64,000 nucleotides of DNA from Basidiobolus meristosporus CBS 931.73 (GCA_002104905.1 MCFE01000237.1:55707-119706); one strand, 5' to 3'; positions 3,444 through 64,000 are shown, numbered from the stretch's first letter. Numbers and translations are program-made. Notes: generated from the sequence alone by a model not told the origin.

Positions 3444-5207
3444 ATGGCCTCAGTTTCTAAGCAAAAGCGTTTAGCTGCCAGAGCTGCAAAGTCAAAGGCA
3501 AAGACAGCCCAAAAGCAAGAGGTTGATGACCTTGACTTGCAAAATTTAAAGATTGAAGCTGAGAGAACTTCAACTGGTGTGCTCACTTCGCAACCTGCTT
3601 CACGTGATATCAAGATTGAGTCTTTTACTCTCTCTTTCTTTGGACGAGAGCTCATCTCTAACGCCACAATTGAGCTTAACTTCGGCCGTCGGTATGGTCT
3701 TATAGGCGCTAACGGGTCTGGAAAAAGTACTTTCCTCAAAGCATTAGGCAACCGTGAAGTGCCGATTCCTCCTCATGTTGATATTTATTTGCTCAGTGAA
3801 GAGGCTGCTCCCAGTGAGTACACTGCTGTTGAAGCGGTCATTAAAAATGCTGAGGAGGAAGTCAAGCGTTTAGAAAAGGAGGTGGAGGAGCTCTTAACTG
3901 AGGAGGATGCGGCTGATAATCCTATTCTGGAAGATATTTATGAGCGTATTGAGAACCTGGATCCTACTACTTTCGAAGTCCGTGCTTGCACGCTTCTTCA
4001 TGGCCTTGGGTTCTCTAAAGACCAAATGGCCAAGAAGACAAAGGACATGTCTGGTGGTTGGCGTATGCGTGTAGCCCTTGCCAAGGCTCTTTTCATTCGT
4101 CCCACTCTTTTGCTTCTTGATGAGCCCACTAATCATTTGGATTTGGAGGCTTGTGTGTGGCTTGAAGAGTATCTCAAAGGCTATGACCGTATTTTGGTGG
4201 TCGTATCGCACTCTCAAGATTTCTTGAATAACGTATGCACAAACATCATGCACCTTACCCATCAACGCAAGTTGACGTATTATGGTGGTAATTATGACAC
4301 ATTCATCAAAACCAAAGCTGAGTTGGAAGCCAATCAGATGAAGGCATACTACAAACAACAGGATGAAATTGCCCATATTAAGAAGTTCATTGCTTCTGCT
4401 GGTACTTACGCCAACTTGGTGAGACAAGCCAAGAGTAAGCAGAAGATTATCGACAAAATGGAAGCTGCAGGCCTAATTGAGAAGGTCGAGCCACCACCAG
4501 CTTTCAAGTTTAACTTCACTGATGTCCCCAAGCTTCCACCCCCAGTCTTGTCATTTGACAAGGTGTGGTTCTCGTACGACGGCAAAGAAGAAAATTCGCT
4601 GTACAGAGATTTGGAATTGGGTGTTGACATGGACTCCCGTATAGCCTTGGTTGGACCTAATGGTGCAGGTAAATCCACACTGCTGAAGCTGATGATGGGC
4701 GAGCTTGTCCCAATTAGTGGGCGTGTATCTCGGCATACCCACTTGAAAATTGGCAAGTACAACCAGCATTCAGCTGATCAACTGGATATGACTGTCAGTC
4801 CCATCGATTACATGCGTAACAAATTCGGTGAGGAGTTCGGTAAGGACGTAAGCTTTTGGCGAACCCAGATTGGCCGCTATGGCCTCACCGGTACCCACCA
4901 GACCTCATTGATCTCGAACTTGTCTGATGGATTGAAGACACGTCTGGTATTTGCTGAATTGGCTTTAGCACAACCGCACATTATTCTTCTGGACGAACCT
5001 ACCAATCACTTGGATATGGAGTCTATTGATTCCTTAGCTGACGCCATTAACCAGTTCAGTGGTGGCGTTGTTTTAGTTTCTCACGATTTCAGACTGATTT
5101 CGCAAGTTGCTCAAGCTATATGGGTCTGCGAGAAAGGAACAGTTACCCCTTGGAATGACGATATTGCCGCTTACAAGGAACATCTTCGTAAGAATGTTAA
5201 ATTGTAA
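3444..5207 (+). CDS. ABCF2: ABC-F family ATPase (ABCF2/Arb1), intronless, 587 aa
   Basis: Two ABC cassettes (GANGSGKS and GPNGAGKS Walker A, MSGGW and LSDG signatures, two LLLDEPTNHLD) and no transmembrane segments. Confidence 0.95.
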   Translation: MASVSKQKRLAARAAKSKAKTAQKQEVDDLDLQNLKIEAERTSTGVLTSQPASRDIKIESFTLSFFGRELISNATIELNFGRRYGLIGANGSGKSTFLKALGNREVPIPPHVDIYLLSEEAAPSEYTAVEAVIKNAEEEVKRLEKEVEELLTEEDAADNPILEDIYERIENLDPTTFEVRACTLLHGLGFSKDQMAKKTKDMSGGWRMRVALAKALFIRPTLLLLDEPTNHLDLEACVWLEEYLKGYDRILVVVSHSQDFLNNVCTNIMHLTHQRKLTYYGGNYDTFIKTKAELEANQMKAYYKQQDEIAHIKKFIASAGTYANLVRQAKSKQKIIDKMEAAGLIEKVEPPPAFKFNFTDVPKLPPPVLSFDKVWFSYDGKEENSLYRDLELGVDMDSRIALVGPNGAGKSTLLKLMMGELVPISGRVSRHTHLKIGKYNQHSADQLDMTVSPIDYMRNKFGEEFGKDVSFWRTQIGRYGLTGTHQTSLISNLSDGLKTRLVFAELALAQPHIILLDEPTNHLDMESIDSLADAINQFSGGVVLVSHDFRLISQVAQAIWVCEKGTVTPWNDDIAAYKEHLRKNVKL

Positions 5208-10743: not shown

Positions 10744-11598
10744 CCTGCCTTCCGCCTCATGATTTAATTTGCATATCAAACGATACACACCACCATAATA
10801 TCCCTCTCTAGTTGTATTCTGTTGCAACTAGTTGTCATTAGCATCGATTGTATGTACCTGTAGATTTACCTCGTTGCAAAAAGAATAAAGAGCTGTTTCA
10901 TTTCATATATATCTTTAAAAGTACTAGCCGGGAATGAATATGGCTTACTGTGAGCTGCTGCATATCGTTTACCACTTCGTTCCTTTTGTATTTGTCAGCC
11001 GCAAGCCTGAGGGATAAAATGGAAAGTGGCACTATGCATGGATGAATGTATAAATTGTACTTATTGAAGCCAGTGAATCCTGGACCTAAGCATGAATTTT
11101 GTTGTATTGCTGACGATAGCTCCTTAATGCTCTCAGGGATTTTATCGAATAATAAATATTTATATGAAAAGAATAGAGTTTGCATTACAATATTAATGGT
11201 TTTTTGTAAACGATATATTTTAGAATCAATGATATGATGTCATCTAAAATATCATGATTATTTCATTCATAGTATTTTCTATGGATTTTCCCACTGTTGG
11301 CAGTCAGCTATCGTATTTGTCGTTTCTCTTCTGAGTTGTCACAAACTTGCTGACATTCAACTTACGGTGAAGCAAATTCCTTGTACATAATATACATCTC
11401 TTTTACTTGTTGTAGCAAAGGTTGTCTTACCAAATAACGAGGATTTTCGCATAGTTCCATACGCGACTTTTGCTGGGCATTGACTAGTGTGTAAAATACT
11501 ACATACTTGTTGTTGGTACATTACTCCTCCTACCTAACCTTACTTTGTGTATACCACTTAGTCTAATAATTTTTCCAGATAAAGCAAGCCTCCGTAAG

Positions 11599-47464: not shown

Positions 47465-47600
47465 ATACTCTTCAATACATATATTGAACTGTTTCTAAAA
47501 GCATCATATTAATTGCAAGTATAATAATAATAAGTTGACCAATCTGATATCTTTTGTGGCAAGTGTTCTGTTTTTGCATATGTTTAACTACCTTAAGGGA

Positions 47601-47643
47601 GGGGGAGACAGTCACCAACAGGTGAAATCTTTATTTCAGTTGA
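47601..47643 (-). mobile_element. 43-bp 3' stub of telomeric LINE family D (interstitial)
   Basis: GGGGGAGACAGTCACCAACAGGTGAAATCTTTATTTCAGTTGA is identical to the 3' ends at 57961 and 58359. Preceded by degenerate TTAAGGG and followed by GTTAGGGTTAGGG. Confidence 0.85.
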
Positions 47644-47656
47644 GTTAGGGTTAGGG

Positions 47657-48272
47657 GAGGGAAAGTCACCAAGGTAGGTGAAATCTTTATTTGATTTCAG
47701 ACAAGTCTAACTACAAATAAAGAAGCCAGCTGGGAATAGAAGATTCCCAAAGTAAACACTAAATTGAATATGAATAAATCTAAGCTAAAGTTAAGGCAGT
47801 ATCCCAGAGTACACTGGAGTTCAGGTTCATGGGGGAGTGAAGTAGATAAGCTTGAGAGATATAATAATCTTTTAAGAAGTGGGTAACAGCAGGAGAAGGG
47901 GAGTTTCTGATAAGTGAAGTGAATCTTGAGAGCAAAGATTCCTCTAATGAGAAGGTCTTGTAAACTGGAGAATCAGGAAATTCTTTGAAGGCATGGTCAG
48001 TAGGTTCCCAGTAAAACTGGTCAGAGACATTTTGAGAGAACTCTTTAGCAATACTTTTGTCAAGTACTACCTCCAGAGTGTGATGGTTGATAAATCTCAT
48101 GTTAACAATCTTGGATAAATTGTTACCCTGTTGCTTGAGATACATCCTATGCTCAGATATAGGAATAAACTCCACATTGGCAAAGTAGCAGACAGCCCAG
48201 TCAGTAGCAGGAGGCAAATCAGAAGTGGCAGGAAACTTTCATTTAGTCTTGGGAAGAGCAGCAGGATGTCTT
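47657..48272 (-). mobile_element. 5'-truncated ORF1-only telomeric element, family A copy A1 (interstitial)
   Basis: Near-identical to the 3' part of 56004-57425. ORF 47780-48217 is the C-terminal domain of the family A protein. Confidence 0.9.
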
Positions 48273-48276
48273 AGGG

Positions 48277-48745
48277 GGAGGGAAAGTCACCAAGTTGGTG
48301 AAATCTTTGTTTGAGTCAAGAACTAATCTAAGTACAAATAAAGAAGCCAATTAAGAAGTCTAGGACCTCTCTAATAAGTAGTCTAATTTATGTTTTGTTT
48401 CATCTCTAATGTTTGTTTCAATAAAGTAAAGCTCATCAGGGGTAAATATGAAATTCAAGGGTTTCGGGGGAAGTACAAATTGTAGATGTTTCTGATCAAT
48501 ATAATCCAAGACTGGAACCCAGCCTGGGATTAGGTGTAGTAGGAAAGGTGTGTGGACTTGTAGGTAGCTCTGCCACATAGATCTAAGATGGTCCTGAGCC
48601 AGTAGCCTTGGTTTCTCAGCTTTTTAAAGTTTTGAAGCAAGCTCTGTTACTACAGCAGAGCCAACCAGGGTGTGCCAGCAAGAAGATTTCAGGGAGGAGT
48701 AAGGGTGTAGGTGTTATAGTAAGGGCTAGGAAAAGGTTAGAAGAG
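48277..48745 (-). mobile_element. Degenerate 3' fragment of a second autonomous LINE lineage (family E)
   Basis: Carries the shared 3' module. The frame SSCWHTLVGSAVVTELASKL*KAEKPRLL...MWQSYLQVHTPFLL aligns by eye with the ORF2 C-terminus GSCWRTILGDPEVKKFAHYILQSEKPKLA...LWQQYLQQHTPFMM, with in-frame stops. Confidence 0.8.
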
Positions 48746-48812
48746 CAGGGGGTCTGGGGGACGCAGTCCCCTAGAGAATAAAAAGCAGGGGGTTTGGGGG
48801 ATGCAATCTCCC
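48745..48812. repeat. Two copies (period 40) of a G-rich motif with a GCA-triloop hairpin
   Basis: GCAGGGGGTCTGGGGGACGCAGTCCCC and GCAGGGGGTTTGGGGGATGCAATCTCCC. Confidence 0.7.
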
Positions 48813-49341
48813 ATACTGCTCCCATACTCTTTAAATTCCCGTTGGATTACTTTTCTCTCATTCTTGGTTCTGGTCCCTTAGGGTTAGAATTCCTCCTCCT
48901 AACCCTTATCACCCTAACCATAAATATTTTTACCCTACAATTGGCACATTGTCTGCTCATATAGTGGGCATGTCTGGGCCAATATTTGTCTCCCTATACT
49001 GTCCATATGCTCTGTATAAGTCTTGATGACTATTTAATTAATAAATTGTTATTTTTAATGTATATCTAATAATTAATGGGATTCATCCCAATCTGACCAC
49101 AATCCCATATTTTGATAAGCTTCAGGCACCATAAATTGCGCGGCCCTAATATGATAAAAAAATTCATGGCCAATACAAATTATCTGTAACCCAATTGCTT
49201 TTACCAAATATAAAGTGTATCCCAAAGTTCAATATATATTATGGCTATAATAGAAACTTTATTTGACACCATCACAACTACTACTTATGTTCTATGTGCA
49301 CATGTATCCCGCGGGAATTGTAAAACTTAGCCACGTGGTAC

Positions 49342-50118
49342 AAAAGTGCTTTTATTTTTCATCATGATAGTTTTACATGAGTTCCTAACGCACTTTGAAA
49401 GTACGCAGTAGCCATACCCCAACAGGTTTTAAGGATGTCCACTAGCTACGTCTACTTGTGTCTAGCGGGAGCCATCAATCATCAGCCGCGCAATACTGAA
49501 ATGCTTTTATTTTTCATCATGCTAGTTTTGTATGAATCCCTAACGCACTTTCATAGTGCGCGGTAACCATACCCCAACAGGTTTTAAGGATACCCACTTG
49601 CTACATTTACTTGTGTCTAGCGGGAGTCATCAATCATCAGCCGCGCGGTAATAAAGTGCTTTTATTTTTCATCATGATAGTTTTACATGAGTCCCTAACG
49701 CACTTTTATAGTGCGCGGTAACCATACCCCAACAGGTTTTAAGGATACCCACTTGCTACATTTACTTGTGTCTAGCGGGAGTTATCAATCATCAGCCGTG
49801 CGGTAATAAAGTGCTTTTATTTTTCATCATGATAGTTTTACATGAGTCCTTAATGCACTTTCATAGTGCGCGGTAACCATACCCCAACAGGTTTTAAGGA
49901 TACCCACTTGCTACGTTTACTTGTGTCTAGCGGGAGTTATCAATCATCAGCCGCGCGGTAATAAAGTGCTTTTATTTTTCATCATGATAGTTTTACATGA
50001 GTCCCTAATGCACTTTTATAGTACGCGGTAACCATACCCCCAGAAAGTAGTGTGGATGCTTACTTTAAACGCTCACTTGTGTATTGTATGGACTATCAAC
50101 AAACAGCCGTGTGGGAAT
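49342..50118. repeat. 155-bp subtelomeric tandem repeat, about 4.5 conserved units plus a degenerate tail
   Basis: The unit start AAAGTGCTTTTATTTTTCATCATG recurs with the marker base at 49346, 49501, 49656, 49811 and 49966. Confidence 0.95.
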
Positions 50119-51192: not shown

Positions 51193-51966
51193 ATGGAAGC
51201 AGGCAGTAGCTGGGTAGATGCCAGGAGTGAAGGTAGAGTACAAAGACAGCAAGGAAGGGGACAAGGACGCGGAACTGGGCACGGAAGAGGAAGAGGGCAA
51301 GGAAGTGGCCAAATCCAAGAGGAGCGTGAAGGAGGTGTTGCAGCAAACGTGGATGATGCTGAGCAAGTTGCTGTAGTCACTACCAGGCGGCTGGTCAACC
51401 AAGTTTCCTAAGCATTGTCAGAGGTTTGACAAGAGCTTCCAGAATATAGGACAACATCGCACCATGAGATATTTCAACGTATGTGCCAGGAGATTAAACA
51501 GAGGAGGGGTGATATTGTAAAGCTAAATTGGGATATTGCTGGACTTCAAGCCCAGATTGATTTCAGTTTCCACCATTCTACTGAGGCATTAGTGGCACAA
51601 ATGGTGGAAAAGTTTGCCCGCATCAGGGCAAGCAATGAGCAGGGTGCATCTTCCGACCCAGGTGTACTTGCAAGCGACAGTATTGGAGGGGATACTACTT
51701 CCTCCCTCAAACCTACCACAAGCCAAGAGACAAGAGCAGAATCCTCCACAACAATGAGAATGGCCCCCACGCAGGTTGATATGGAAGTGTGCAAAGAAGA
51801 CGTGGAGAAGCAGAGTGGGGATACTATAGGCCAACCACAAACTGTAATGGAGGCGGAGAGACCAAGTCATATTGTCATCTTAAAAATACCACAGGTTGAT
51901 TCATTGCTATCACTTCCCCCATCATCACTATCTGTGCCCTCATCACCACCGCCATCCTCTGGCTAA
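51193..51966 (+). pseudogene. Degenerate ORF of unknown, probably transposon, origin (RG-rich segment plus coiled coil)
   Basis: ORFs 51193-51411 and 51481-51966 are in the same frame, separated by two stops. Confidence 0.35.
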
Positions 51967-52577: not shown

Positions 52578-53413
52578 TGTCGGGATTTACTTAGAATATT
52601 TTCACCAAAATACCAGGTACCCAGAACATGAAAATTCTCAAAGTTGTCCAAACAGCCCCAAACTTTGCACACATGTTCTTGGGACCTTCCTTAACCTATT
52701 CTACGTGTTTGTAATGCCAAGACCAGGTAAAAGTATAAATACTACTTTTACATTCAATAAATCATTAAGTGAAAACCACATAATCTACTTGTTCTCCCAA
52801 TCACTTCCAATATCTCCAAGACTCTTACAACAGGTTATGAGCCCCAAGCTGTCACTCTCTGCAATGTCTACTACTGCTATTACTGGAACTTTTCCCTCTG
52901 CTGAAAAGTTGGATGGATCTAACTACCAAGTGTGGAAGGTGAAGATGAAGATGCTGCTACAAGAAAGAGGCCTTTGGGATATTGTCATGGGAGAAGAATG
53001 CCCTCCTAAAAACGTGGGAGAGGAAGCCTTGAAGTACCAGAAGAAAGAACAAAGTGCCTTTAACTGCATTTGCCTTAATGTCAAGGACAAATTGCTAATT
53101 CAATGCTCAAGAGCAAAAACGGCAAAGAATGCCTGGAAGGCATTAGAAGACACCTACCAGTCATGTTCAGCTGCCAAGAAAATGTATCTGAGAAGAAAAT
53201 TCTTTACTACAAAGATGCTGCCAGGAGAAGAAATGAAAAATCTAATTAATAGAATTACCCTGCTGGTAGATGGGATGGAATCTGTGGGCGTACCAACTAC
53301 TGATGAGGATGTGATAGTTACCATCCTGAATAGCCTGACAGACGAGTTTCAGGGCCTTGTATCAGCCTTAGAGTCCAGAACTCAAGATTTGACCTTAAAT
53401 AATGTGTACAGAA
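52578..53413 (+). mobile_element. Truncated Ty1/copia LTR retrotransposon: putative 5' LTR 52578-52832, PBS 52833-52845, gag 52864-53413 cut at the telomeric junction
   Basis: TG...CAACA followed by the copia-type PBS GGTTATGAGCCC. Gag reads KLDGSNYQVWKVKMKMLLQERGLWDIV...KTAKNAWKALEDTY (Retrotran_gag_2/UBN2). The LTR start is tentative. Confidence 0.8.
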
Positions 53414-53422
53414 GGGTTAGGG

Positions 53423-53942
53423 GGAGGAAAGTCACCAAGTGGTGAAATCTTTATTTACTTATGACAAGTATTTAAAGAAGCCAAGTTAATCTGAAGTAAT
53501 TCCTAGAAAGCTAGGTCTGAGAGATATCTTCCTGGTAAGCCAGGTCTGAGAGTTGAGAAGCTGAGTGGTACTATATTTCCTAGTTAGCTAGGTCTGAGAG
53601 AGGTTTCCTGGAAAGCCAGGCCTGAGAAGTGAGAATCTGAGTATATCTGAGGTGAGTTGTACTGATTTGCGGTAGCTTGTTTGTGGCCAGAATGGCCAGT
53701 AGACTGGGGGAACTGAGGGGTATTTCTGGGCGATCACTGGCCAAATTTACTAGGCAAATTTGACCAATTAGCATTTCAAGGATTTCAGCCAATCAGAGCC
53801 TTTACTTTGCCCGATGGTTGATCAAGCCATCTCCCAATGAGCACACATCAATTTATTGATCAAATTTTGTTGGATCCAGGATTTGAACCCACAACCATGG
53901 GTATGGAAGGGTTAGGGATAACCACAAGGCTAAGTGTTCTTG
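53423..53942 (-). mobile_element. tRNA-derived telomeric SINE, family C copy C1
   Basis: Non-coding, about 520 bp. Minus-strand A box TAGCCTTGTGG and B box GGTTCAAATCC 32 nt apart; shared 3' module; flanked by TTAGGG. Confidence 0.85.
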
Positions 53943-53949
53943 GTTAGGG

Positions 53950-54909
53950 GGATGATCATCACCAAAGGGTGAAATCTTTATTTAAATAATCAATAAAGAA
54001 GCCAAGTTTGAATATGAATATCTGAGATGCAGGAAGCCTACAAGATAAACTTGGACTTTGCTGTATCCCAAATATCCTCAATATCAAAGTCTAGAGGAGA
54101 GTGTAGCAAGACTGCTTGTTCACTGTAGTATTTCTTGAGGAAGTTTGTGACTTGAAGGGAAGGAGAGTTTTTCAACAAGCTGGTAAATCTTTTGAGAAGT
54201 TCTTTTTCCAGAGAGAATGGCACAAAGAGTGGAATGTCCAAGTGATGTCTGAATATATGCTCTGAGAGCTCCCAATCCAGCATATTTTTGACTTCTTCTG
54301 TAAAATCTTCACCAATATCTTTGTCAAGAATAACTTCCAAGAGATCCCTGGCAATGTACTGAATGTTAATAATCTTAGGCATATGAATACCTAGGTCCTT
54401 GAGGTAGTTTCTTTGTTCTGATATTGGGAGATATCCTGCATTTCTGAAATAGCAAACAGCCCAGTTGGCAGTAGGAGGAGTATCAGGGCTGACAGGGAAT
54501 CTTCTTCTGGCTTTAGAGTGCACCGGCTTAGGAGACTGTCTTGATGGAAGGGCAGCTGGTTTTGGATGAGCTTGAAGTGCTTGAGAGTAGGTCTGAGTAC
54601 AAGTAGTAGAAGTTCCTGGTTGCTGAGAATTTTCAGATTGACTGGATGAAGAGCTAATTGAGGGGTTGCAAGGTAAGGAAGAAGCTGAAAGAGAAGTGGA
54701 GAGGGCTGGGTGAAGTTCAGAAAGAGTTTTGAAAAGAATTTGGATCTGATATTTCAACATTGAGTTTTCAGCTTCAAGAAGAGAAACTCTTTGTTCAAGG
54801 TAAGAAGTCTGTAAAGAGTGAAAGTTGGGTAAAGACATGGAAGTAATAAATAAGAAGAATGGAGTAGTTGGGGTGGGAGGGTGGGAAAATAGGTAAGAAG
54901 AAAAGAGAG
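53950..54909 (-). mobile_element. ORF1-only telomeric element, family B copy B1 (no 5' monomer)
   Basis: Shared 3' module, intact ORF 54038-54838, G4 motif, and it ends at the 24-nt R repeat. Confidence 0.9.
54038..54838 (-). CDS. ORF1-like protein of element B1, 266 aa: coiled coil, S/T/P linker, conserved C-terminal domain
   Basis: LEQRVSLLEAEN; PPTANWAVCYF...IINIQYI..DLLEVILD...IWDTA is homologous to the LINE ORF1. Confidence 0.85.
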   Translation of the reverse strand: MSLPNFHSLQTSYLEQRVSLLEAENSMLKYQIQILFKTLSELHPALSTSLSASSLPCNPSISSSSSQSENSQQPGTSTTCTQTYSQALQAHPKPAALPSRQSPKPVHSKARRRFPVSPDTPPTANWAVCYFRNAGYLPISEQRNYLKDLGIHMPKIINIQYIARDLLEVILDKDIGEDFTEEVKNMLDWELSEHIFRHHLDIPLFVPFSLEKELLKRFTSLLKNSPSLQVTNFLKKYYSEQAVLLHSPLDFDIEDIWDTAKSKFIL

Positions 54910-55977
54910 GGGGATGATAATCACCACAGGGTGAAATCTTTATTTAAATTGTAAATAAAGAAGCCAAGTTTGAATATGAATATCTGAGATAAAGTAAGCC
55001 TACAAGATAAACTTGGACTTTGCTGTATCCCAGATATCCTCAATATCAAAGTTTAGAGGAGAATGTAGGAAAACTGCTTGTTCACTGTAGTATTTCTTGA
55101 GGAAGTTTGTGACTTGAAGGGAAGGAGAGTTTTTCAACAAGCTGGTAAACCTTTTGAGGAGTTCTTTTTCCAGAGAGAATGGTACAAAGAGTGCAATGTC
55201 TAAATGATGTCTGAATATATGCTCTGAGAGCTCCCAATCCAGCATATTTTTGACTTCCTCTGTAAAATCTTCCACAATATCTTTGTCAAGAATGACTTCC
55301 AAGAGATCCCTGGCAATGTACTGAATGTTAATAATCTTGGGCATATGAATACCTAGGTCCTTGAGGTAGTTTCTTTGTTCTGAAATTGGAAGATAGCCAG
55401 CATTTCTGAAATAGCAAACAGCCCAATTGGCAGTGGGAGGAGTATCAGGGCTGACAGGAAATCTTCTTCTGGCTTTAGGGTGCACTGGCTTAGGTGGCTG
55501 TCTTATTGGGAGAACAGTGGACTTTGGATGAGCTTGAAGTGCTTGGGAGTATGTCTGAGTAAGAATGGCAGGAGTTGCTGGTTGCTGACAGTGTTCAGGT
55601 TGACTGGAAGAAGTGCTGGTTGAGGGGTTGCAAGGTAAGGAAGTAGCTGAAAGAGAAGTAGAGAGTGCTGGGTGAAGTTCAGAGAGAGTTTTGAAGAGAA
55701 CCTGGATCTGAGATTTCAACATTGAGTTTTCAGCTTCAAGAAGAGAAACTCTTTGTTCAAGGTAAGAAGTCTGTAAAGAGTGAAAGTTGGGTAAAGACAT
55801 GGAAGAAGTAGATAATAAGAAGAAAAGAGTAGTTGGGGTGGGAGGGTGGGAAAATAGTTAAGAAGAAAAGAGAGGAAAGATCTGAAATTGAAAATCTCAG
55901 AATTTATAGATGGATGGACAAGGGTAAAGGATAGATTAATCCAGGGTTAGGGAAAAATAGTTAAGAAGAAAAGAGAG
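54910..55977 (-). mobile_element. ORF1-only telomeric element, family B copy B2 (one 103-bp 5' monomer)
   Basis: Shared 3' module, ORF 55000-55800, R repeat at 55851-55874 and 55954-55977. Confidence 0.9.
55000..55800 (-). CDS. ORF1-like protein of element B2, 266 aa
   Basis: Paralogue of 54038-54838 with changes concentrated in the linker. Confidence 0.85.
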   Translation of the reverse strand: MSLPNFHSLQTSYLEQRVSLLEAENSMLKSQIQVLFKTLSELHPALSTSLSATSLPCNPSTSTSSSQPEHCQQPATPAILTQTYSQALQAHPKSTVLPIRQPPKPVHPKARRRFPVSPDTPPTANWAVCYFRNAGYLPISEQRNYLKDLGIHMPKIINIQYIARDLLEVILDKDIVEDFTEEVKNMLDWELSEHIFRHHLDIALFVPFSLEKELLKRFTSLLKNSPSLQVTNFLKKYYSEQAVFLHSPLNFDIEDIWDTAKSKFIL

Positions 55978-56003
55978 GGTTAGGGTTAGGGTTAGGGTTA
56001 GGG
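55977..56003 (+). repeat. Interstitial telomeric spacer GGG(TTAGGG)4
   Basis: Read directly; the longest internal spacer of the array. Confidence 0.95.
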
Positions 56004-56126
56004 GAGGGAAAGTCACCAAGGTAGGTGAAATCTTTATTTGAATGCAGACAAGTCTAACTACAAATAAAGAAGCCAGCTGGGAATAGAAGATTCCCAAAGT
56101 AAACACTAAGTTGAATATGAATAAAT

Positions 56127-56855
56127 CTAAGCTAAAGTTAAGGCAGTATCCCAGAGTACACTGGAGTTCAGGTTCATGGGGGAGTGAAGTAGATAAGCTT
56201 GAGATATATAATAATCTTTGAGGAAGTGGGTAACAGCAGGTGAAGGGGAGTTTTTGATAAGTGAAGTGAATCTTGAGAGCAGAGATTCCTCTAATGAGAA
56301 GGACTTGTAAACTGGAGAATCAGGAAACTCTTTAAAGGCATGGTCAGTAGGTTCCCAGTAAAACTGGTCAGAGACATTTTGAGAGAACTCTTTAGCAATA
56401 CTTTTGTCAAGTACTACCTCCAGAGTGTGATTGTTGATAAATCTCATGTTAACAATCTTGGATAAATTGTAACCTTGTTGCTTGAGATACATCCTATGCT
56501 CAGATATAGGAATGAACTCCACATTGGCAAAGTAGCAGACAGCCCAGTCAGTAGCAGGAGGCAAATCAGAAGTGGCAGGAAACTTTCTTTTAGTCTTGGG
56601 AGGAGCAGCAGGATGTCTTGAGGAAGCAGGAAAAGGCTTTTTGACAGCTTCAGAGTAGGAAGAGTGAGCAGGAGCAGATGATTCTTGGGGAGTCTTGTTG
56701 ACAGGAAGAGTTGGCACAGGGACAATAGATTCTTGCAGATCAGAGAAGGCAGAAAACAGCTTTTGAACTTGTTTCTTGAGTAAAGCATTTTCAGCTTCAA
56801 CAAGTGCAAGCCTTTCCTCAAGGAAGGAAATCTGAAGGGAATGGAGTGAAGGCAT
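56127..56855 (-). CDS. ORF1-like protein of element A2, 242 aa from the first ATG
   Basis: MPSLHSLQISFLEERLALVEAEN...PPATDWAVCYFANVEFIPISEHR...LWDTA. Confidence 0.85.
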   Translation of the reverse strand: MPSLHSLQISFLEERLALVEAENALLKKQVQKLFSAFSDLQESIVPVPTLPVNKTPQESSAPAHSSYSEAVKKPFPASSRHPAAPPKTKRKFPATSDLPPATDWAVCYFANVEFIPISEHRMYLKQQGYNLSKIVNMRFINNHTLEVVLDKSIAKEFSQNVSDQFYWEPTDHAFKEFPDSPVYKSFSLEESLLSRFTSLIKNSPSPAVTHFLKDYYISQAYLLHSPMNLNSSVLWDTALTLA

Positions 56856-56897
56856 AAGAAATAAGAAGAAGAGGGTAAGATGGGGTGGGTGGGTGGG

Positions 56898-57425
56898 AAA
56901 ATTAGCAGGGAGAAGAGAAGGAAGGAGCAAAAATTCCAGAAGTCAGAATTTATAGATGGATGGACAAGGGTAGATGGATGGATTATTCCTGGGTTAGGAA
57001 AATTAGCAGGGAGAAGAGAAGGAAGGAGCAAAAATTCCAGAAGTCAGAATTTATAGATGGATGGACAAGGGTAGATGGATGGATTATTCCTGGGTTAGGA
57101 AAATTAGCAGGGAGAAGAGAAGGAAGGAGCAAAAATTCCAGAAGTCAGAATTTATAGATGGATGGACAAGGGTAGATGGATGGATTATTCCTGGGTTAGG
57201 AAAATTAGCAGGGAGAAGAGAAGGAAGGAGCAAAAATTCCAGAAGTCAGAATTTATAGATGGATGGACAAGGGTAGATGGATGGATTATTCCTGGGTTAG
57301 GAAAATTAGCAGGGAGAAGAGAAGGAAGGAGCAAAAATTCCAGAAGTCAGAATTTATAGATGGATGGACAAGGGTAGATGGATGGATTATTCCTGGGTTA
57401 GGAAAATTAGCAGGGAGAAGAGAAG
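56898..57425. repeat. 101-bp tandem monomer x5.2, containing a minus-strand TATAAA and an internal GGGTTAGG
   Basis: Exact 101-bp period; the artefactual ORFs start at 56960, 57061, 57162 and 57263. Confidence 0.95.
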
Positions 57426-57433
57426 GGTTAGGG

Positions 57434-57953
57434 GCAGGAAAGTCACCAAGTGGTGAAATCTTTATTTACTTATGACAAGTATCTAAAGAAGCCAAGTTAA
57501 TCTGAAGTTATTCCTAGAAAGCTAGGTCTGAGAGATATCTTCCTGGTAAGCCAGGTCTGAGAGTTGAGAAGCTGAGTGGTACTATATTTCCTAGTTAGCT
57601 AGGTCTGAGAGAGGTTTCCTGGAAAGCCAGGCCTGAGAAGTGAGAATCTGAATATATCTGAGCTAAGTTATACTGGTTTGCGGTAGCTGAATAGTGGCCG
57701 GAATGGCCAGTAGACTGGGGGAACTGAGATGAATTTCTGGGCGATCACTGGCCAAATTTACTAGGCAAATCTGGCCAAGTAGCATTTCAAGGATTTCAGC
57801 CAATCAGAGCCTTTACTTTGCCCGATGGTTGATCAAGCCATCTCCCAATGAGCACACATCAATTTATTAATCAAATTTTGCTGGATCCAGGATTTGAACC
57901 CACAACCATGGGTATGGAAGGGTTAGGGATAACCACAAGGCTAAGTGTTCTTG
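57434..57953 (-). mobile_element. tRNA-derived telomeric SINE, copy C2
   Basis: About 5 differences from C3 by eye; same A/B boxes and 3' module. Confidence 0.85.
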
Positions 57954-57960
57954 GTTAGGG

Positions 57961-58353
57961 GGGAGACAGTCACCAACAGGTGAAATCTTTATTTCAGTTG
58001 AAACAAAGAAGCCAGCGCTACTGTTGTAGCTTTGATACAAGAGTGTATAGCTGAGGGGAATTTGTAGGTAAGTTAATAAGAAGTGATGATAGTTCTTCAG
58101 TGCTCAAGACACTGTTCAGTGGGAAGGGGGGTAGCAAGAGAGGTAAGAATGACTTGTGAACAACATTAATGAGGGGAATGTGATAAGGATTGATATTCAT
58201 CATAAAGGGAGTGTGCTGCTGCAGATATTGCTGCCAAAGGTCTGTCAAGTACTTCAGGTAGGCCAGCTTGGGTTTTTCTGACTGCAGAATATAGTGAGCA
58301 AACTTCTTGACTTCAGGATCTCCAAGTATAGTTCTCCAGCAGGAGTCAGGTGT
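57961..58353 (-). mobile_element. 5'-truncated LINE family D copy D1 (last ~390 bp)
   Basis: Matches 58359-58751 with about 4 substitutions and is capped by TTAGGG. Confidence 0.9.
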
Positions 58354-58416
58354 TAGGGGGGGAGACAGTCACCAACAGGTGAAATCTTTATTTCAGTTGA
58401 AACAAAGAAGCCAGTG

Positions 58417-61185
58417 CTACTGTTGTAGCTTTGATACAAGAGTGTGTAGCTGAGGGGAATTTGTAGGTAAGTTAATAAGAAGTGATGATAGTTCTTCAGT
58501 GCTCAAGACACTGTTCAGTGGGAAGGGGGGTAGCAAGAGAGGTAAGAATGACTTGTGAACAACATTAATGAGGGGAATGTGATAAGGGTTGATATTCATC
58601 ATAAAGGGAGTGTGCTGCTGCAGATATTGCTGCCAAAGGTCTGTCAAGTACTTCAGGTAGGCCAGCTTGGGTTTTTCTGACTGCAGAATATAGTGAGCAA
58701 ACTTCTTGACTTCAGGATCTCCAAGTATAGTTCTCCAGCAGGAGCCAGGTGTAGTGTGGTGTGTTCTCTTCCAGGCCTTAATCAGTGGGTTGTTGCAGTT
58801 GTGAAGTCTGAGGTATAATCTGGTTCTAAGGTAGAGAAGTCTGATCTTATAGGGCATAAACCCAAAAGCACCAAGAATAGCATGTCTGTAGGGGCATTCA
58901 GGCAAATGAGGCACCAAGGAGGTAATGCACCATACTGCAAACTTGTCAAGCTTAGTGCAGTCTCTAGAAGTAAGAGAGAGAAGTGGTAAGCCAAATTCCA
59001 GGACAGGGAAGACAAACTGCTTGAGTAGAAGGAGGCAGCTGGGAGCTGAAGTTGTAGGAGCAGTAACAGCCAGTAGCTTGTGGAGTGCCTGTCTTGCCAG
59101 GATAATTCTCTTCTTCAGGTGTGCTCCAGAGTCTAGTCCAGTAGGAAGGAAAGGAAAGCCAAGATATGTAGCAGAAACCTGAGCAGGTAGAGTGGAGTTC
59201 TCCAAGTTGATGGGAGAGCCCAAAGGTACTGTCTTTGCAATGGAAAGCTGGAGATTATTCTTCTGCAGATACTGGTGGATGGTCTGGGAGTCTTGTTGCA
59301 CATTGGAGGAGGATATTCTGATGTCATCAGCAAAGAGAGTAACCAGGCAGTCAGCTGAGAGTCTTGGGAAATCATTCAGGAAGATGGCAAACAGTATAGG
59401 ACCAAGCACAGAGCCTTGAACCACTCCATTAGGAACTGAGAACACAGCTGATTGCTCACTTGGGTGCAGAATTCTTGCTTGTGGATCCAGAAACAGAGAC
59501 CTGACAAGGAGGGTGAGAGAGGTACTGGAGAAGCATTGCAACTTGGACCAAAGCAGATTTCTGTCAACTGAATCAAAGGCCTTAGTAATATCAAACAGAA
59601 CAGAGGGATACTTGCACTGGAGAGAGTGATCTTGGCTAAGTATGACTGCATATTCCAAGGAGAGGCCAGGAACAAAGCCAAACTGTGCAGGATGAAACTT
59701 GAGGGAGTCAGAGTAGAGCTCCTGAGCAAGCAGAAGCTCAAATACCTTTCTGCAGGTGGGCAGCAGATATATTGGCCTGTAGGAGCTAGGATCCAGGTGC
59801 TTTCCTTTACCCTTGTACAGTGGCAGAACATTTGCAAAGGACCATTCCTCAGGAGTAGAAAGCTGGGCTGAGCATTGCTGAAACAGTGGAAGCAGAAGTG
59901 CAGACATGGCCTTGGTACTAGTCTTCAGAAGCTCATAGGAGATTGTGTCCACACCTGGAGCAGTAGAGTTGGGAAGCCTCTTGAGCACATTATGGATTCT
60001 CCTTTGATCAAGTGCAAGTGGGATGGGCAGAGTCTTGAAGTCAGGATGAAAGCCAGGAGTTGAGTACTGCTTTGTAGAGAAGAAGATGTTAGCCAGCTGT
60101 TCTGTTGAAGGTAACTTCCTGGAAGAGGGCCTCATTGCCCTGTAGAGTCTTGATACTGTTCTTGTTATAGAGTTGGAAGATTGCAGAGGCAAGGAACTCA
60201 TAATATGATCCCAGAGCTGAGTATGCAGAGTGTGGTGAATTGCCTTGGAGTGGTGTATTGCTGTCAGGAGGAGTTTCTCTGTTTTTGGGTTAGGGAAGCT
60301 CAGGTAGCTTTGTTGCAGGGCTGAAACAATGGATTCCCATTTTCTTGAGGTAACAGCAGTAGTCTTGCATGGCAGTGAGAGGGAGGCAGACACCAGAATC
60401 AGATGCTTCACAAAGAGCCAGGCAAAGTTGAGATCATCTGGCAGAGAAAGTAGCAAACTGGCAAGCTTCAAGTAGTTCCCAAAGTCTTTCTTCTGATTCT
60501 TGGTAGCTTTGTGGGTGAGCACAGTAAGTTTTGGCAGCTTCTTCTTCACAACTGGTTGCATAGAAAGGGACCAGGCTGGGTGGTCAGAGGCTCTCAAGGA
60601 TCCTAGCTCAGCTCCAGAGAATTGCTTAACTTCATTCACAAAGTAGAGGGCAGCAGCAGAAGGGCAGATCCAGTCAACACATCTTTTCTCAGATTGAGCA
60701 CCTAGTGCTAGCAGGTGGCTTTCTCTCAGGAAGTTCAGTAGGAATGTAGACCTTGGCTTCATTCTTGCAGTCAGAGTAGTCTTGTTCTCAGGATGGGGAA
60801 TGTTGAGATCTCCAAGCAAGATAACAGGTGTTGATATAGATTGTTGGTATTGCTGAACCTTCTGGCATATTACTTGCACTTCCTGAAGGGCTAGACTTGG
60901 AGGCAGATAGCAGAGCACCAGACTGATAGTTGGCAACTGGAGAGCAGCACAGTAAGGGGAGTAAAGAGGAACACAGAGCTGAGGAGTATTGATGGTAGAA
61001 GAGATGAAGCAGATAGAGGAGGTATTCTTTGTTCTAGGAGTAGAAAAGCAATATAGATTAGTCAAAAGTATAGAGGGTAGCTGGACATCAATCAAACACA
61101 GGAGGGAAAATCTTGAAAGAAGTCTCTCTAGAGTTGGTCTTGATGGCTGTATGCTGTTGCAGTTAAGCAACAGAACTTCAGGTAG
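58417..61185 (-). CDS. LINE ORF2: AP-endonuclease plus reverse transcriptase, 922 codons after the ORF1 stop; no AUG before residue ~140
   Basis: APE: LNCN, CLIDV, CYLPP, GDLN, VDWI, SDH. RT: APGVD, YRPIYLL, QFGF, FDITKAFDSV, GVVQGSVLGP, FADD, YLGF. Confidence 0.95.
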   Translation of the reverse strand, partial: LPEVLLLNCNSIQPSRPTLERLLSRFSLLCLIDVQLPSILLTNLYCFSTPRTKNTSSICFISSTINTPQLCVPLYSPYCAALQLPTISLVLCYLPPSLALQEVQVICQKVQQYQQSISTPVILLGDLNIPHPENKTTLTARMKPRSTFLLNFLRESHLLALGAQSEKRCVDWICPSAAALYFVNEVKQFSGAELGSLRASDHPAWSLSMQPVVKKKLPKLTVLTHKATKNQKKDFGNYLKLASLLLSLPDDLNFAWLFVKHLILVSASLSLPCKTTAVTSRKWESIVSALQQSYLSFPNPKTEKLLLTAIHHSKAIHHTLHTQLWDHIMSSLPLQSSNSITRTVSRLYRAMRPSSRKLPSTEQLANIFFSTKQYSTPGFHPDFKTLPIPLALDQRRIHNVLKRLPNSTAPGVDTISYELLKTSTKAMSALLLPLFQQCSAQLSTPEEWSFANVLPLYKGKGKHLDPSSYRPIYLLPTCRKVFELLLAQELYSDSLKFHPAQFGFVPGLSLEYAVILSQDHSLQCKYPSVLFDITKAFDSVDRNLLWSKLQCFSSTSLTLLVRSLFLDPQARILHPSEQSAVFSVPNGVVQGSVLGPILFAIFLNDFPRLSADCLVTLFADDIRISSSNVQQDSQTIHQYLQKNNLQLSIAKTVPLGSPINLENSTLPAQVSATYLGFPFLPTGLDSGAHLKKRIILARQALHKLLAVTAPTTSAPSCLLLLKQFVFPVLEFGLPLLSLTSRDCTKLDKFAVWCITSLVPHLPECPYRHAILGAFGFMPYKIRLLYLRTRLYLRLHNCNNPLIKAWKRTHHTTPGSCWRTILGDPEVKKFAHYILQSEKPKLAYLKYLTDLWQQYLQQHTPFMMNINPYHIPLINVVHKSFLPLLLPPFPLNSVLSTEELSSLLINLPTNSPQLHTLVSKLQQ

Positions 61186-61188
61186 TCA
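61154..61188 (-). promoter_or_regulatory. Putative stop-codon readthrough signal: UGA-CUA, 12-nt spacer, 7-bp hairpin
   Basis: Minus strand reads TGA CTACCTGAAGTT CTGTTGC TTAACT GCAACAG. Confidence 0.65.
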
Positions 61189-62244
61189 GGCAGAGGTTGT
61201 AGCTTCTTCAGAGGCAGCATTAACAATGTGACCTGCAGAGTCCCAGAGCTCTTCAAATGGTGCATCACTTAAGTCAGCAAGGAGGGAAATGGCATGGTTC
61301 TTGAGGAAGTATGCCACATCATAGGAGGGGGCTTGTCTCTTGATGGCAGCAAAGAAAGACAGAATGGCAACATGGGCTGGAGGCTTGTTGAACAGTAGAG
61401 AGTCAGAGGATTCAGATTCTTCAGGCACTATCTTGAAGTCAGTTTTCAGCCAGTTAAGGTTCTTCTCCACAAAGGCAACAAATGGGTCAGCAATGTTTTG
61501 GTCTAGGATAACCTCCAGAATCTTCCCTTTTCTCCAGGCCAGGTTGACAATTCTTGAGAGCTGAATATTGCATGCCTTGAGTGCTTTCCTGATGTTGGAA
61601 ATGGGGGTCCAGGGAACTTGCTTCAAGTACACCACAGTCCAGGTAGAAGCTGGTGGTAGGTTTGCTGGGGGCTTGTAAGTCCTTCTGTGTTGCAATGGAG
61701 CTGCAGTAGTCAGATTGGAGTCCACATTCTCAGTAGAAGGTTTTCTTGATGTGTCTTGCTGAATAGTACTGGAGCTGGATGTGCTGATAATTCTTGCCAG
61801 AACCTTGCCTGCATAAGTCTGAGGTATAGCTGAGGTGACTGTAGAGGTGGTGGCAGCTGGTGCAGGTGGAGAGGCAGAGACTGAAGCAGGAACTGAGGTC
61901 ACCTGGGAGAAGGCAGTAGAAGCAGGTTTTCTGGGAGGAACAGAGTTCACTATCCAGTTGTTCTGTAAAACACTGGAGTAGCTTTTCTGTGGAACAGGAT
62001 CTTGCTCTTGAACAGGAACAGAAGCAGGAGGCTGGGGCTGAGCAGAAGTGGTAAGGCAGTGGCACTCCAAGGAAGCTTTTTGCAAGGCATCTCTGGCAGT
62101 TTTCAGGGCAGTATTGGCTTCATTCTTGAGCTTCTTGCATTGGGCATCCAGTCTCTTGTTTTCAATAGCCAGGGCAGTATTGGCAGCCTCTAAATCAGCA
62201 ATTCTCTTCTCAATTGCAAGGAATCTCTGAAGAAATGCATCAGT
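61186..62244 (-). CDS. LINE ORF1 (coiled coil, low-complexity linker, conserved domain); open to the 5' junction, ATG missing
   Basis: The frame stays open upstream of the TTG at 62085 (TDAFLQRFLAIEKRIADLEAANTAL...). PPASTWTVVYL...IVNL...ILEVILD...LWDSA is shared with the A and B proteins. Confidence 0.85.
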   Translation of the reverse strand, partial: TDAFLQRFLAIEKRIADLEAANTALAIENKRLDAQCKKLKNEANTALKTARDALQKASLECHCLTTSAQPQPPASVPVQEQDPVPQKSYSSVLQNNWIVNSVPPRKPASTAFSQVTSVPASVSASPPAPAATTSTVTSAIPQTYAGKVLARIISTSSSSTIQQDTSRKPSTENVDSNLTTAAPLQHRRTYKPPANLPPASTWTVVYLKQVPWTPISNIRKALKACNIQLSRIVNLAWRKGKILEVILDQNIADPFVAFVEKNLNWLKTDFKIVPEESESSDSLLFNKPPAHVAILSFFAAIKRQAPSYDVAYFLKNHAISLLADLSDAPFEELWDSAGHIVNAASEEATTSA

Positions 62245-62260
62245 AGGGTTAGGGTTAGGG

Positions 62261-62782
62261 GGGGAGGAAAGTCACCAAGTGGTGAAATCTTTATTTACTT
62301 ATGACAAGTATCTAAAGAAGCCAAGTTAATCTGAAGTAATTCCTAGAAAGCTAGGTCTGAGAGATATCTTCCTGGTAAGCCAGGTCTGAGAGTTGAGAAG
62401 CTGAGTGGTACTATATTTCCTAGTTAGCTAGGTCTGAGAGAGGTTTCCTGGAAAGCCAGGCCTGAGAAGTGAGAATCTGAATATATCTGAGCTAAGTTAT
62501 ACTGGTTTGCGGTAGCTGAATTGTGGCCGGAATGGCCAGTAGACTGGGGGAACTGAGAGGAATTTCTGGGCGATCACTGGCCAAATTTACTAGGCAAATC
62601 TGGCCAATTAGCATTTCAAGGATTTCAGCCAATCAGAGCCTTTACTTTGCCCGATGGTTGATCAAGCCATCTCCCAATGAGCACACATCAATTTATTAAT
62701 CAAATTTTGCTGGATCCAGGATTTGAACCCACAACCATGGGTATGGAAGGGTTAGGGATAACCACAAGGCTAAGTGTTCTTG
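62261..62782 (-). mobile_element. tRNA-derived telomeric SINE, copy C3
   Basis: A box at 62762-62772, B box at 62719-62729, internal AGGGTTAGGG at 62748-62757, shared 3' module. Confidence 0.85.
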
Positions 62783-62794
62783 GTTGGGTTAGGG

Positions 62795-63812
62795 GAGGGA
62801 AAGTCACCAAGGCAGGTGAAATCTTTATTTGAATGCAGACAAGTCTAACTACAAATAAAGAAGCCAGCTGGGAATAGAAGATTCCCAAAGTAAACACTAA
62901 GTTGAATATGAATAAATCTAAGCTAAAGTTAAGGCAGTATCCCAGAGTACACTGGAGTTCAGGTTCATGGGGGAGTGAAGTAGATAAGCTTGAGAGATAT
63001 AATAATCTTTCAAGAAGTGGGTAACAGCAGGTGAAGGGGAGTTTTTGATAAGTGAAGTGAATCTTGAGAGCAGAGATTCCTCTAATGAGAAGGTCTTGTA
63101 AACTGGAGAATCAGGAAACTCTTTAAAGGCATGGTCAGTAGGCTCCCAGTAAAACTGGTCAGAGACATTTTGAGAGAACTCTTTAGCAATACTTTTGTCA
63201 AGTACTACCTCCAGAGTGTGATGGTTGATAAATCTCATGTTAACAATCTTGGATAAATTGTAACCTTGTTGCTTGAGATACATCCTATGCTCAGATATAG
63301 GAATAAACTCCACATTGGCAAAGTAGCAGACAGCCCAGTCAGTAGCAGGAGGCAAATCAGAAGTAGCAGGAAACTTTCTTTTAGTCTTGGGAGGAGCAGC
63401 AGGATTTCTTGAGGAAGCAGGAACAGGCTTTTTGACAGCTTCAGAGTAGGAAGAGTGAGCAGGAGCAGATGAATCTTGGGAAGTCTTGTTGACAGGAACA
63501 GCTGGCAGAGAGACAATAGATTCTTGCAGATCAGAGAAGGCAGAAAACAGCTTTTGAACTTGTTTCTTGAGTAAAGCATTTTCAGCTTCAGCAAGTGCAA
63601 GCCTTTCCTCAAGGAAGGAAATCTGAAGGGAATGGAGTGAAGGCATAAGAAATAAGAAGAAGAGGGTAGGATAGGGTGGGTGGGTGGGAATATTAGCAGG
63701 GAGAAGAGAAGGAAGGAGCAAAAATTCCAGAAGTCAGAATTTATAGATGGATGGACAAGGGTAGATGGATGGATTATTCCTGGGTTAGGAAAATTAGCAG
63801 GGAGAAGAGAAG
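62795..63812 (-). mobile_element. ORF1-only telomeric element, family A copy A3 (one 101-bp monomer); most distal element
   Basis: Shared 3' module, ORF with ATG at 63646, R repeat at 63689-63711 and 63790-63812, directly capped by the telomere. Confidence 0.9.
62918..63646 (-). CDS. ORF1-like protein of element A3, 242 aa
   Basis: Near-identical to 56127-56855. Confidence 0.85.
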   Translation of the reverse strand: MPSLHSLQISFLEERLALAEAENALLKKQVQKLFSAFSDLQESIVSLPAVPVNKTSQDSSAPAHSSYSEAVKKPVPASSRNPAAPPKTKRKFPATSDLPPATDWAVCYFANVEFIPISEHRMYLKQQGYNLSKIVNMRFINHHTLEVVLDKSIAKEFSQNVSDQFYWEPTDHAFKEFPDSPVYKTFSLEESLLSRFTSLIKNSPSPAVTHFLKDYYISQAYLLHSPMNLNSSVLWDTALTLA

Positions 63813-64000
63813 GGTTAGGGTTAGGGTTAGGGTTAGGGTTAGGGTTAGGGTTAGGGTTAGGGTTAGGGTTAGGGTTAGGGTTAGGGTTAGGGTTAGGGTT
63901 AGGGTTAGGGTTAGGGTTAGGGTTAGGGTTAGGGTTAGGGTTAGGGTTAGGGTTAGGGTTAGGGTTAGGGTTAGGGTTAGGGTTAGGGTTAGGGTTAGGG
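63812..64000 (+). repeat. Terminal telomere, GGG plus 31 perfect TTAGGG units to the end of the window
   Basis: Read directly; the G-rich strand runs 5'->3' toward the end. Confidence 0.99.

Follow-up and report, generated by a model that had tools for sequence, protein, structure and literature searches.

A putative telomere-dedicated family of non-LTR retroelements, with ORF1-only and SINE-like members, at a chromosome end of the fungus Basidiobolus meristosporus

Overall organisation of the chromosome end

The stretch of DNA described here (the window, 64,000 nucleotides) forms one end of a scaffold of 119,706 bp from the early-diverging fungus Basidiobolus meristosporus CBS 931.73 (GCA_002104905.1 MCFE01000237.1:55707-119706). 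Between an interrupted copia-type retrotransposon and the terminal telomere it contains an array of nine retroelements, all in the same orientation. With moderate confidence, we regard these as a telomere-dedicated family of Basidiobolus retroelements without long terminal repeats (non-LTR retroelements), which would be copied by reverse transcription primed from the 3'-hydroxyl (3'-OH) of the G-rich telomere strand, probably at denuded or broken ends.

The array occupies nucleotides 53417-63814, with the 3' ends of the elements proximal to the centromere. From the copia side, comparison of the window with itself gives the order C1-B1-B2-A2-C2-D1-D2-C3-A3. Families A and B contain only the first open reading frame (ORF1) of a long interspersed nuclear element (LINE), family C resembles a short interspersed nuclear element (SINE) and family D is a LINE; copies within a family are 92-99% identical. 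The successive junctions, counted from the one with copia, contain 1, 1, 0, 4, 1, 1, 1, 2 and 1 TTAGGG units, followed by 31 units at the terminus, without a single mismatch. In a first-pass annotation of the sequence, nine elements in one orientation had been described, with 0-4 TTAGGG units between neighbours and a normal telomere as the cap, and the boundaries, junction counts and cap bear this out. They also agree with its proposal that the elements coexist with telomerase-type repeats, which are present both between elements and as the cap. Its restriction of the array to positions 53414-64000 does not hold, as the series continues in an older, interior array from position 47590. In the 47.5 kb of interior sequence before that (positions 1-47589), self-comparison revealed no copies of the array families. 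From the inside to the chromosome end, the features are:

52705-53416, plus strand: copia-type gag ORF, cut by the start of the array (Pfam Retrotran_gag_2, E 4.9e-41)
53423-53943, minus strand: C1, SINE-like, about 521 nt, with the common 3' tail
53950-54910, minus strand: B1, ORF1-only; ORF 54038-54838, 266 amino acids, ATG start
54911-55979, minus strand: B2, ORF1-only; ORF 55000-55800; one additional 5' repeat unit; 92% identical to B1, from which no TTAGGG separates it
56004-57427, minus strand: A2, ORF1-only; ORF with its ATG at 56855 and its stop at 56127; (TTAGGG)4 at 55980-56003
57434-57954, minus strand: C2, SINE-like, 96% identical to C1
57961-58352, minus strand: D1, the 3' 392 nt of the D LINE, 5'-truncated; 99% identical to positions 3497-3890 of D2
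58359-62248, minus strand: D2, 5'-truncated LINE of 3890 nt, with its 3' tail at 58359-58412
62261-62788, minus strand: C3, SINE-like, with (TTAGGG)2 before it at 62249-62260
62795-63814, minus strand: A3, ORF1-only, the terminal element; ORF 62918-63646; 98% identical to A2
63815-64000, plus strand: terminal telomere, (TTAGGG)31, added directly to A3, whose 5' end has the complement ...AGAAGGG

The match to the copia gag protein stops at residue 236, corresponding to nucleotide 53413, and the first TTAGGG is found at 53417. The array thus starts 4 nt beyond the last matched gag residue, and its foundation therefore appears to have been a chromosome end broken within another transposon.

The sense strands of all families (53423-63814, and also in the loci L003, L004, L009 and L134) are poor in G, with 13-19% G, coding regions included. 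Their GC skew is between -0.18 and -0.34, while that of host genes in the window is between -0.07 and +0.09, so the array prolongs the G-rich/C-rich strand asymmetry of the telomere.

The common 3' tail

All families share a 3' module of 55-75 nt, which in the LINEs begins just past the stop codon. Its core, AAAGATTTCACC, occurs 12 times in the window, where 0.62 copies would be expected by chance, and none of 100 shuffled sequences contained 12 or more. All 12 copies are on the minus strand, with the element 3' ends towards the centromere; the polarity is thus the one the first-pass annotation had linked to cDNA primed on the 3'-OH of the G-strand. The consensus fold derived from the alignment consists of two predicted hairpins, with four of the 16 pairs changed on both sides. 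Stem 1 is AU-rich, 9-12 bp long and contains AAUAAA, with the two-sided changes located at its inner pairs. Stem 2 (CACC/GGUG) is invariant and is followed by a C-rich run and then by CCCTAA. There is no poly(A) at the element 3' ends; the C-rich run is joined straight to the CCCTAA.

The final 10-14 nt of the tail are lineage-specific: families A and C have the variant of a second LINE lineage, termed E type, family D has its own and family B has a third. With three variants, it is probable that members of the consortium are copied by more than one reverse transcriptase. The single end-targeting machinery that had been proposed for all members therefore survives in part, as one 3' module is present throughout, but in at least three versions, and A and C match the E-type LINE rather than D. 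A scan of metagenome contigs for the tail motif was uninformative: a single unrelated bacterial sequence accounted for 106 of the 121 matches, and in none of the 121 did CCCTAA come next.

Structure of the D LINE

The second open reading frame of D2 (ORF2, 58417-61185) contains 922 uninterrupted codons. It encodes a reverse transcriptase of the non-LTR type (Pfam RVT_1, E 1e-24), for which the closest solved structure is human L1 ORF2p (E 3.6e-12), with the R2 reverse transcriptase at 0.55, L1 and R2 being the only such enzymes among the solved structures. At the amino-terminus there is a weak match to the endonuclease family Exo_endo_phos_2 (Pfam, E 3.5e-4). An AlphaFold2 model of the first 275 residues (mean predicted local distance difference test score, pLDDT, 74) has the fold of an apurinic/apyrimidinic (AP) endonuclease, matching ExoA, APE1 and the TRAS1 endonuclease at E values of about 1e-9. 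A profile of the domain did not match any PDB sequence, and fold comparison alone succeeded. The motifs N8, Y93, D126/N128, D171 and S200-D201-H202 are invariant across five lineages, while the first catalytic glutamate is an aspartate (Asp33) in all five. The ratio of non-synonymous to synonymous substitution rates (dN/dS) is 0.125 for the endonuclease and 0.075 for the reverse transcriptase, indicative of purifying selection on both. In the 230 residues carboxy-terminal of the reverse transcriptase, no further Pfam domain was detected; a restriction-enzyme-like endonuclease was not found there by Pfam, the endonuclease being of the APE type and amino-terminal instead. Judged by sequence and modelled fold, the LINE is an APE-type non-LTR retrotransposon.

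Upstream, D2 retains a remnant of ORF1 (61189-62247) that has no ATG; its frame is open from the flanking telomere repeats. Relatives of D2 contain about 80-150 more amino-terminal ORF1 residues, including a cysteine-rich segment, and D2 starts about 400 nt into the sequence of its nearest relative. We therefore rejected D2, the one long LINE copy of the array, as a full-length, autonomous element, as it is 5'-truncated and its ORF1 start is missing, together with some 400 nt or more of the 5' end. The LINE with APE endonuclease and reverse transcriptase that had been annotated is thus present, but not as an autonomous element.

ORF1 and ORF2 of D2 share one frame, interrupted by a single in-frame UGA at 61186-61188. 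This boundary, UGA-CU(A/C/T), is in frame in six lineages whose ORF2 identity is 48-80%, namely D2 and five others (loci L003, L004, L005, L009, L010 and L134), and the endonuclease starts five residues further on. If the frames were independent, such agreement would have a probability of about (1/3)^5. This pattern suggests programmed stop-codon readthrough, which would produce an ORF1-ORF2 fusion protein.

In an exhaustive search, close relatives of the reverse transcriptase were confined to Basidiobolus-type sequences, all others having at most 37% identity. The nearest ones outside this cluster come from a mixture of taxa: arthropods, one Mucorales fungus and metagenomes. D copies on separate scaffolds are 98-99% identical, which points to recent activity. 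Of the E-type lineage, a longer copy in locus L002 was translated; a third LINE lineage was encountered in other samples only.

The ORF1-only families and the ORF1 fold

Families A and B each encode a single protein, about 242-266 residues long. These proteins have 44% identity between A and B (BLASTP E 7e-71) and are homologous to ORF1 of D2, with BLASTP E values of 1e-22 for A and 7e-19 for B, over the carboxy-terminal two thirds of the LINE protein. By these alignments the two families, which had been annotated as ORF1-only, are related to the LINE through its ORF1. The B1 and B2 ORFs have a dN/dS of 0.17, indicative of purifying selection, and the B ORF is intact in Basidiobolus ranarum, with 62% identity.

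In the ORF1 model, a long amino-terminal helix (residues 2-64) is followed by a disordered linker and a beta-alpha-beta-beta-alpha-beta unit (residues 203-269). The similarity of the model to RNA recognition motifs (RRMs) in Foldseek is weak (E about 0.07). Pfam gave no Transposase_22 match for ORF1, and neither sequence nor model contains CCHC zinc knuckles.

The 5' ends of A and B are made up of tandem units of 101 bp, at 56896-57427 in A2 (5.3 units), 63687-63814 in A3 (1.3 units) and 55864-55979 in B2; such 5' units are also present at L132 1-210. Each unit contains a TATAAAT motif about 30 nt ahead of the next unit boundary, and both A2 and A3 begin exactly at a boundary. Full-length LINEs from other samples have a similar TATAAAT-like motif at their 5' ends. 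From this arrangement, the units may be promoter monomers.

The SINE-like family

The C elements are 521-528 nt long, and the alignment of C1, C2 and C3 has a mean column identity of 97%. They contain no ORF of 80 or more amino acids, and their tail matches that of the E-type LINE. Near the 5' end, two motifs about 45 nt apart, a tRNA-like spacing, resemble the RNA polymerase III A and B boxes; TAGCCTTGTGG and GGTTCAAATCC each agree with their own box consensus at ten of 11 positions. Between them lies a telomere-repeat-like stretch, CCCTAACCC (C1 53880-53943, and the same region of C2 and C3). No tRNA was recognised in the C head by ARAGORN, with default settings and with thresholds down to 60%, or by Rfam with E values up to 10. 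As both were negative, the tRNA label of the first-pass annotation was dropped, while the box-like motifs, the non-coding body and the LINE-matching tail of its tRNA-SINE remain. A tRNA origin is plausible from the motif match.

Other chromosome ends

Seven end-of-contig loci were sampled, all reached through proteins encoded by the elements. Among them are four further B. meristosporus scaffold ends (MCFE01000244, 090, 428 and 243), where D, E, A and C copies are located no further than about 25 kb from the end. In all seven loci the sense strand is directed inward from the contig end, and the 33 tails scored across the loci, plus five in L135, agree in strand within each locus. Confinement to chromosome ends in a uniform orientation, as predicted in the first-pass annotation, is thus found in these seven loci, to which the statement applies. 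CCCTAA follows the tail in 25 of the 28 cases with sufficient flank. Tracts between elements never exceed four units at any locus, compared to 31 in the live telomere, and the innermost junctions with unique DNA contain 0 or 1 unit.

Two B. ranarum contigs begin inside B-like elements, the tails of which are joined to unique genes via one CCCTAA. In contigs from public runs, three different families are arranged in tandem with 1-2 CCCTAA units in between, and the same type of junction is found in other species at 58-63% ORF2 identity. An assembly artefact, in which repeat-rich long reads were joined into a chimera at telomere repeats, might be suspected from a single assembly of a repeat-rich end, known at assembly level. 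The same families, tails and junctions are nevertheless present on five B. meristosporus scaffolds, in the separate B. ranarum assembly and in independent public runs, and we consider this explanation extremely improbable.

Recombination evidently also shapes the arrays. Locus L001 contains tandem D units with identical truncation; an 11-kb block is 98-99% identical between L135 (845-11701) and L001 (1-11026); and one head-to-head telomere-like junction, described below, recurs in relic arrays at five scaffold ends. The L135 copy of the block has a retroelement array on either side, a structure suggestive of several rounds in which ends were healed and subtelomeric blocks captured. These structures are what would be expected if ordinary dispersed LINEs and SINEs had piled up in subtelomeres and the arrays had arisen by recombination, break-induced replication or segmental duplication between ends. 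Such a pile-up does not readily account for the exact joining of tail to CCCTAA, the many distinct 5' truncation points with telomere repeats after each of them, the uniform polarity, the lack of copies in the interior of the window or the recurrence of the junction type in other species. As the origin of the arrays as a whole, it appears to us improbable.

Attachment to the chromosome end

The polarity and the junctions are explained if cDNA is primed by the G-strand 3'-OH on RNA that has C-strand repeats at its 3' end. In the mechanism we favour, the D and E LINEs, and the third lineage, would encode two proteins, ORF1, containing a coiled coil and an RRM-like domain, and ORF2, containing APE endonuclease and reverse transcriptase, the latter being reached through the single conserved in-frame UGA. 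The LINE RNAs would end in the two-hairpin module of 55-75 nt plus one or a few CCCUAA units. The reverse transcriptase would recognise this module and copy the RNA from a G-strand 3'-OH, the cDNA lengthening the G-rich strand, so that the element 3' end faces the centromere. The ORF1-only A and B elements and the SINE-like C would be copied in trans via the same module. Telomerase would next add TTAGGG to the cDNA end, which finishes in ...GGG, and repetition of the cycle would give the head-to-tail stack. As the priming site, we favour a broken end, or one stripped of nearly all repeats, over a random nick in a full-length telomere. What is observed is the anatomy of the arrays, together with the homologies and polarity of the elements and their conservation in other species; recognition of the tail, mobilisation in trans, readthrough and the source of the 3'-OH are steps that we infer.

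The source of the 3'-OH is where the main alternative differs. With the same reverse-transcription chemistry, the APE endonuclease of the element could nick the G strand of duplex telomere repeats, as that of silkworm TRAS1 does. The invariant catalytic motifs (N, D in the place of E, Y, D-N, D and S-D-H), the purifying selection on the domain and the modelled fold, with the TRAS1 enzyme among its best structural matches, are in line with this. The short tracts could be accommodated by nicks at the base of the telomere, or by breakage and loss of arrays with longer tracts. However, all 28 scored junctions have at most four units, compared to 31 in the telomere, and for the nine junctions of the terminal array alone a uniform nick would have a probability of about (5/31)^9. 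Every innermost junction with unique DNA contains 0 or 1 unit, and the first catalytic glutamate has been replaced by aspartate. Drosophila TART, too, has retained an endonuclease domain, yet attaches to chromosome ends. In Magnaporthe, interstitial tracts of at least three TTAGGG units break often, including in MoTeR arrays (PMC7367193), in line with the loss of longer tracts. We rate nicking as a real but lesser possibility. The 0-4-unit junctions set against a 31-unit telomere, the 0-1-unit innermost junctions and the broken copia element favour priming at a denuded or broken end.

Several points weigh against priming at such ends by a telomere-dedicated family. Transposition and the RNA 3' ends are deduced here from the genomic sequence. 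The purifying selection on the endonuclease fits a nick in duplex telomere DNA at least as well as free-end priming, the short tracts between elements could reflect survivorship, and the recombinational structure of the arrays (the identical truncated units and the blocks shared between ends) is plain. In the B. meristosporus loci sampled, no full-length LINE with an ORF1 start was seen. The loci number only seven and, as all were found through element proteins, dispersed copies may exist elsewhere in the genome.

Going one step further than priming at denuded ends, it is conceivable, although we would put it forward only tentatively, that RNAs ending in telomere complement are reverse transcribed directly onto broken or repeat-less ends without any endonuclease cut, as a second end-healing system beside telomerase, tolerated by the host or useful to it. 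If true, Basidiobolus would be a living intermediate between telomerase telomeres and the retrotransposon telomere of Drosophila, with HeT-A-like gag-only partners and a UGA-readthrough fusion.

Comparison with known telomere retroelements

For the entanglement of a selfish element with chromosome-end maintenance, the main natural model is provided by retrotransposons dedicated to telomeres. The best-studied case, Drosophila, has no telomerase. The fungal cases known so far (MoTeR, FoTeR, Cnl1 and Coprina) belong, to our knowledge, to other element classes and have no gag-only partners.

The enzyme architecture is closest to that of the R1-clade, telomere-repeat-specific elements TRAS1 and SART1 of Bombyx mori. 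Like these, the Basidiobolus LINEs have an APE endonuclease, a reverse transcriptase and a separate ORF1 and are inserted beside telomeric repeats in a presumably telomerase-positive host, with the 3' junction in telomeric repeats (25 of 28 here) and, as in TRAS, the sense strand corresponding to the C strand. For TRAS1 and SART1, initiation is assumed to be guided by the structure of the 3' untranslated region and by telomere-like read-through at the 3' end (PMC7265360). Unlike TRAS and SART elements, those of Basidiobolus have no poly(A) tail, and their ORF1, in which no CCHC knuckles were found, is predicted to have a coiled coil and an RRM-like fold instead. ORF1 and ORF2 are in frame across a UGA, the tracts between elements are of 0-4 units instead of long repeat stretches, and the reverse transcriptase is at most 37% identical to anything outside Basidiobolus-type sequences.

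With HeT-A, TART and TAHRE of Drosophila, the arrays share the terminal head-to-tail arrangement with 3' ends towards the centromere, gag-only elements beside elements encoding reverse transcriptase, 5' truncation to varying extents, a bias in strand composition that runs along the array and the apparent healing of broken ends. In Basidiobolus, however, telomerase-type repeats are not replaced but cap and separate the elements, there are no poly(A) junctions, a SINE-like non-coding member is present and the host is a fungus.

Magnaporthe MoTeR1 and MoTeR2, Fusarium FoTeR and Cryptococcus Cnl1 are likewise found at fungal TTAGGG telomeres, in head-to-tail arrays with the 5' ends towards the chromosome end. 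They resemble the Basidiobolus arrays in having short telomere tracts between elements, an autonomous and a dependent element with common termini, and 5' tandem repeats (PMC7367193, PMC12857005). They belong to the CRE clade, with a restriction-enzyme-like endonuclease and no ORF1 (PMC7367193, PMC12857005), while the Basidiobolus LINEs have an amino-terminal APE endonuclease and an ORF1, and an ORF1-like protein is conserved in their dependants. Tracts of more than 20 units occur in MoTeR arrays, compared to 0-4 here.

Penelope-like terminal elements, reportedly described by Gladyshev and Arkhipova in 2007, are said to have the matching orientation and a 3' complement of the telomere repeat able to pair with the G overhang. 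Unlike such elements (Coprina in fungi, Athena in rotifers), those of Basidiobolus have a LINE-type reverse transcriptase, an endonuclease domain and an ORF1. Coprina and Athena are endonuclease-deficient and limited to chromosome termini (PMC8557442).

As far as sampled, the Basidiobolus partners are at chromosome ends, unlike dispersed dependants such as HAL1, the ORF1-only derivatives of mammalian L1, and the UnaSINE1/UnaL2 pair of SINE and LINE with a common 3' tail. Elements of the HAL1 and UnaSINE1 type keep ORF1 or a LINE-matching, structured 3' tail and depend on the reverse transcriptase of the partner LINE.

The system thus works like the Drosophila and MoTeR1/MoTeR2 arrays and has the enzyme architecture of TRAS and SART, yet departs from each in defining features. 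In a literature search, of incomplete coverage and not including Repbase, neither telomere elements of Basidiobolus nor a fungal telomere LINE of the APE type were found to be described. The claim that the combination had no prior description is thus upheld for the literature searched, although MoTeR1 and MoTeR2 already join an autonomous element and a dependant in fungal telomeres (PMC7367193).

The interest is a specialist one, in telomeres and transposons, rather than a new principle. In the Basidiobolus system, an APE LINE is accompanied by conserved ORF1-only elements and by a SINE-like rider, on an apparently healed break beneath a TTAGGG cap. If our interpretation is true, a division of labour like that of Drosophila evolved independently and can coexist with telomerase. 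In this culturable fungus, it could then be tested whether the elements compete with telomerase or back it up, whether the endonuclease is needed at a natural end, and in what way a short structured tail plus one telomere repeat would guide the reverse transcriptase.

The older interior array

A second, older array, now interior, spans 47590-48877, with its three elements, a D stub, an A element and an E-type LINE fragment, at 47590-48703. The features are:

47590-47644, minus strand: D-type LINE 3' stub of 55 nt, its tail identical to that of D2; the innermost element, abutting unique DNA
47657-48270, minus strand: A1, 5'-truncated A element that shares 97% identity with A2 and A3 across 616 nt; (TTAGGG)2 on one side (47645-47656), a single TTAGGG on the other (48271-48276)
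48277-48703, minus strand: E-type LINE 3' fragment, which E-type copies in L001 and L002 match at their 3' ends with 95-96% identity
48704-48925, no strand assigned: 180-nt piece common to chromosome ends, then a head-to-head telomere-like junction (48878-48925); also in L001, L002, L133 and L135

In the head-to-head junction, repeats of the G-strand type (TTAGGGTTAG) are followed by AATTC and by degenerate repeats of the C-strand type. Apart from the window, it is located at L001 (about 11270-11305), L002 (about 6855-6890), L133 (911-950) and L135 (13104-13131). An old fusion of two ends, or a fold-back, may have left this junction as a scar that was later copied between ends. Distal to the relic array there is a 155-bp satellite (49329-50093) of at least four units, 76-90% identical, which is also found at L133 1-900, the end of scaffold MCFE01000428.

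Neighbouring genes

An ORF of 161 amino acids at 51481-51966 belongs to a cluster of 20 B. meristosporus hypothetical proteins that are at least 90% identical and are spread over many scaffolds. Either the subtelomeres contain a multicopy gene here, or the ORF is a piece of another repeat. Beside the subtelomeric array of scaffold MCFE01000090 (L002 10790-18266), there are five tandem genes for proteins of 181-231 amino acids with a CHAP domain, which is typical of bacterial cell-wall amidases.

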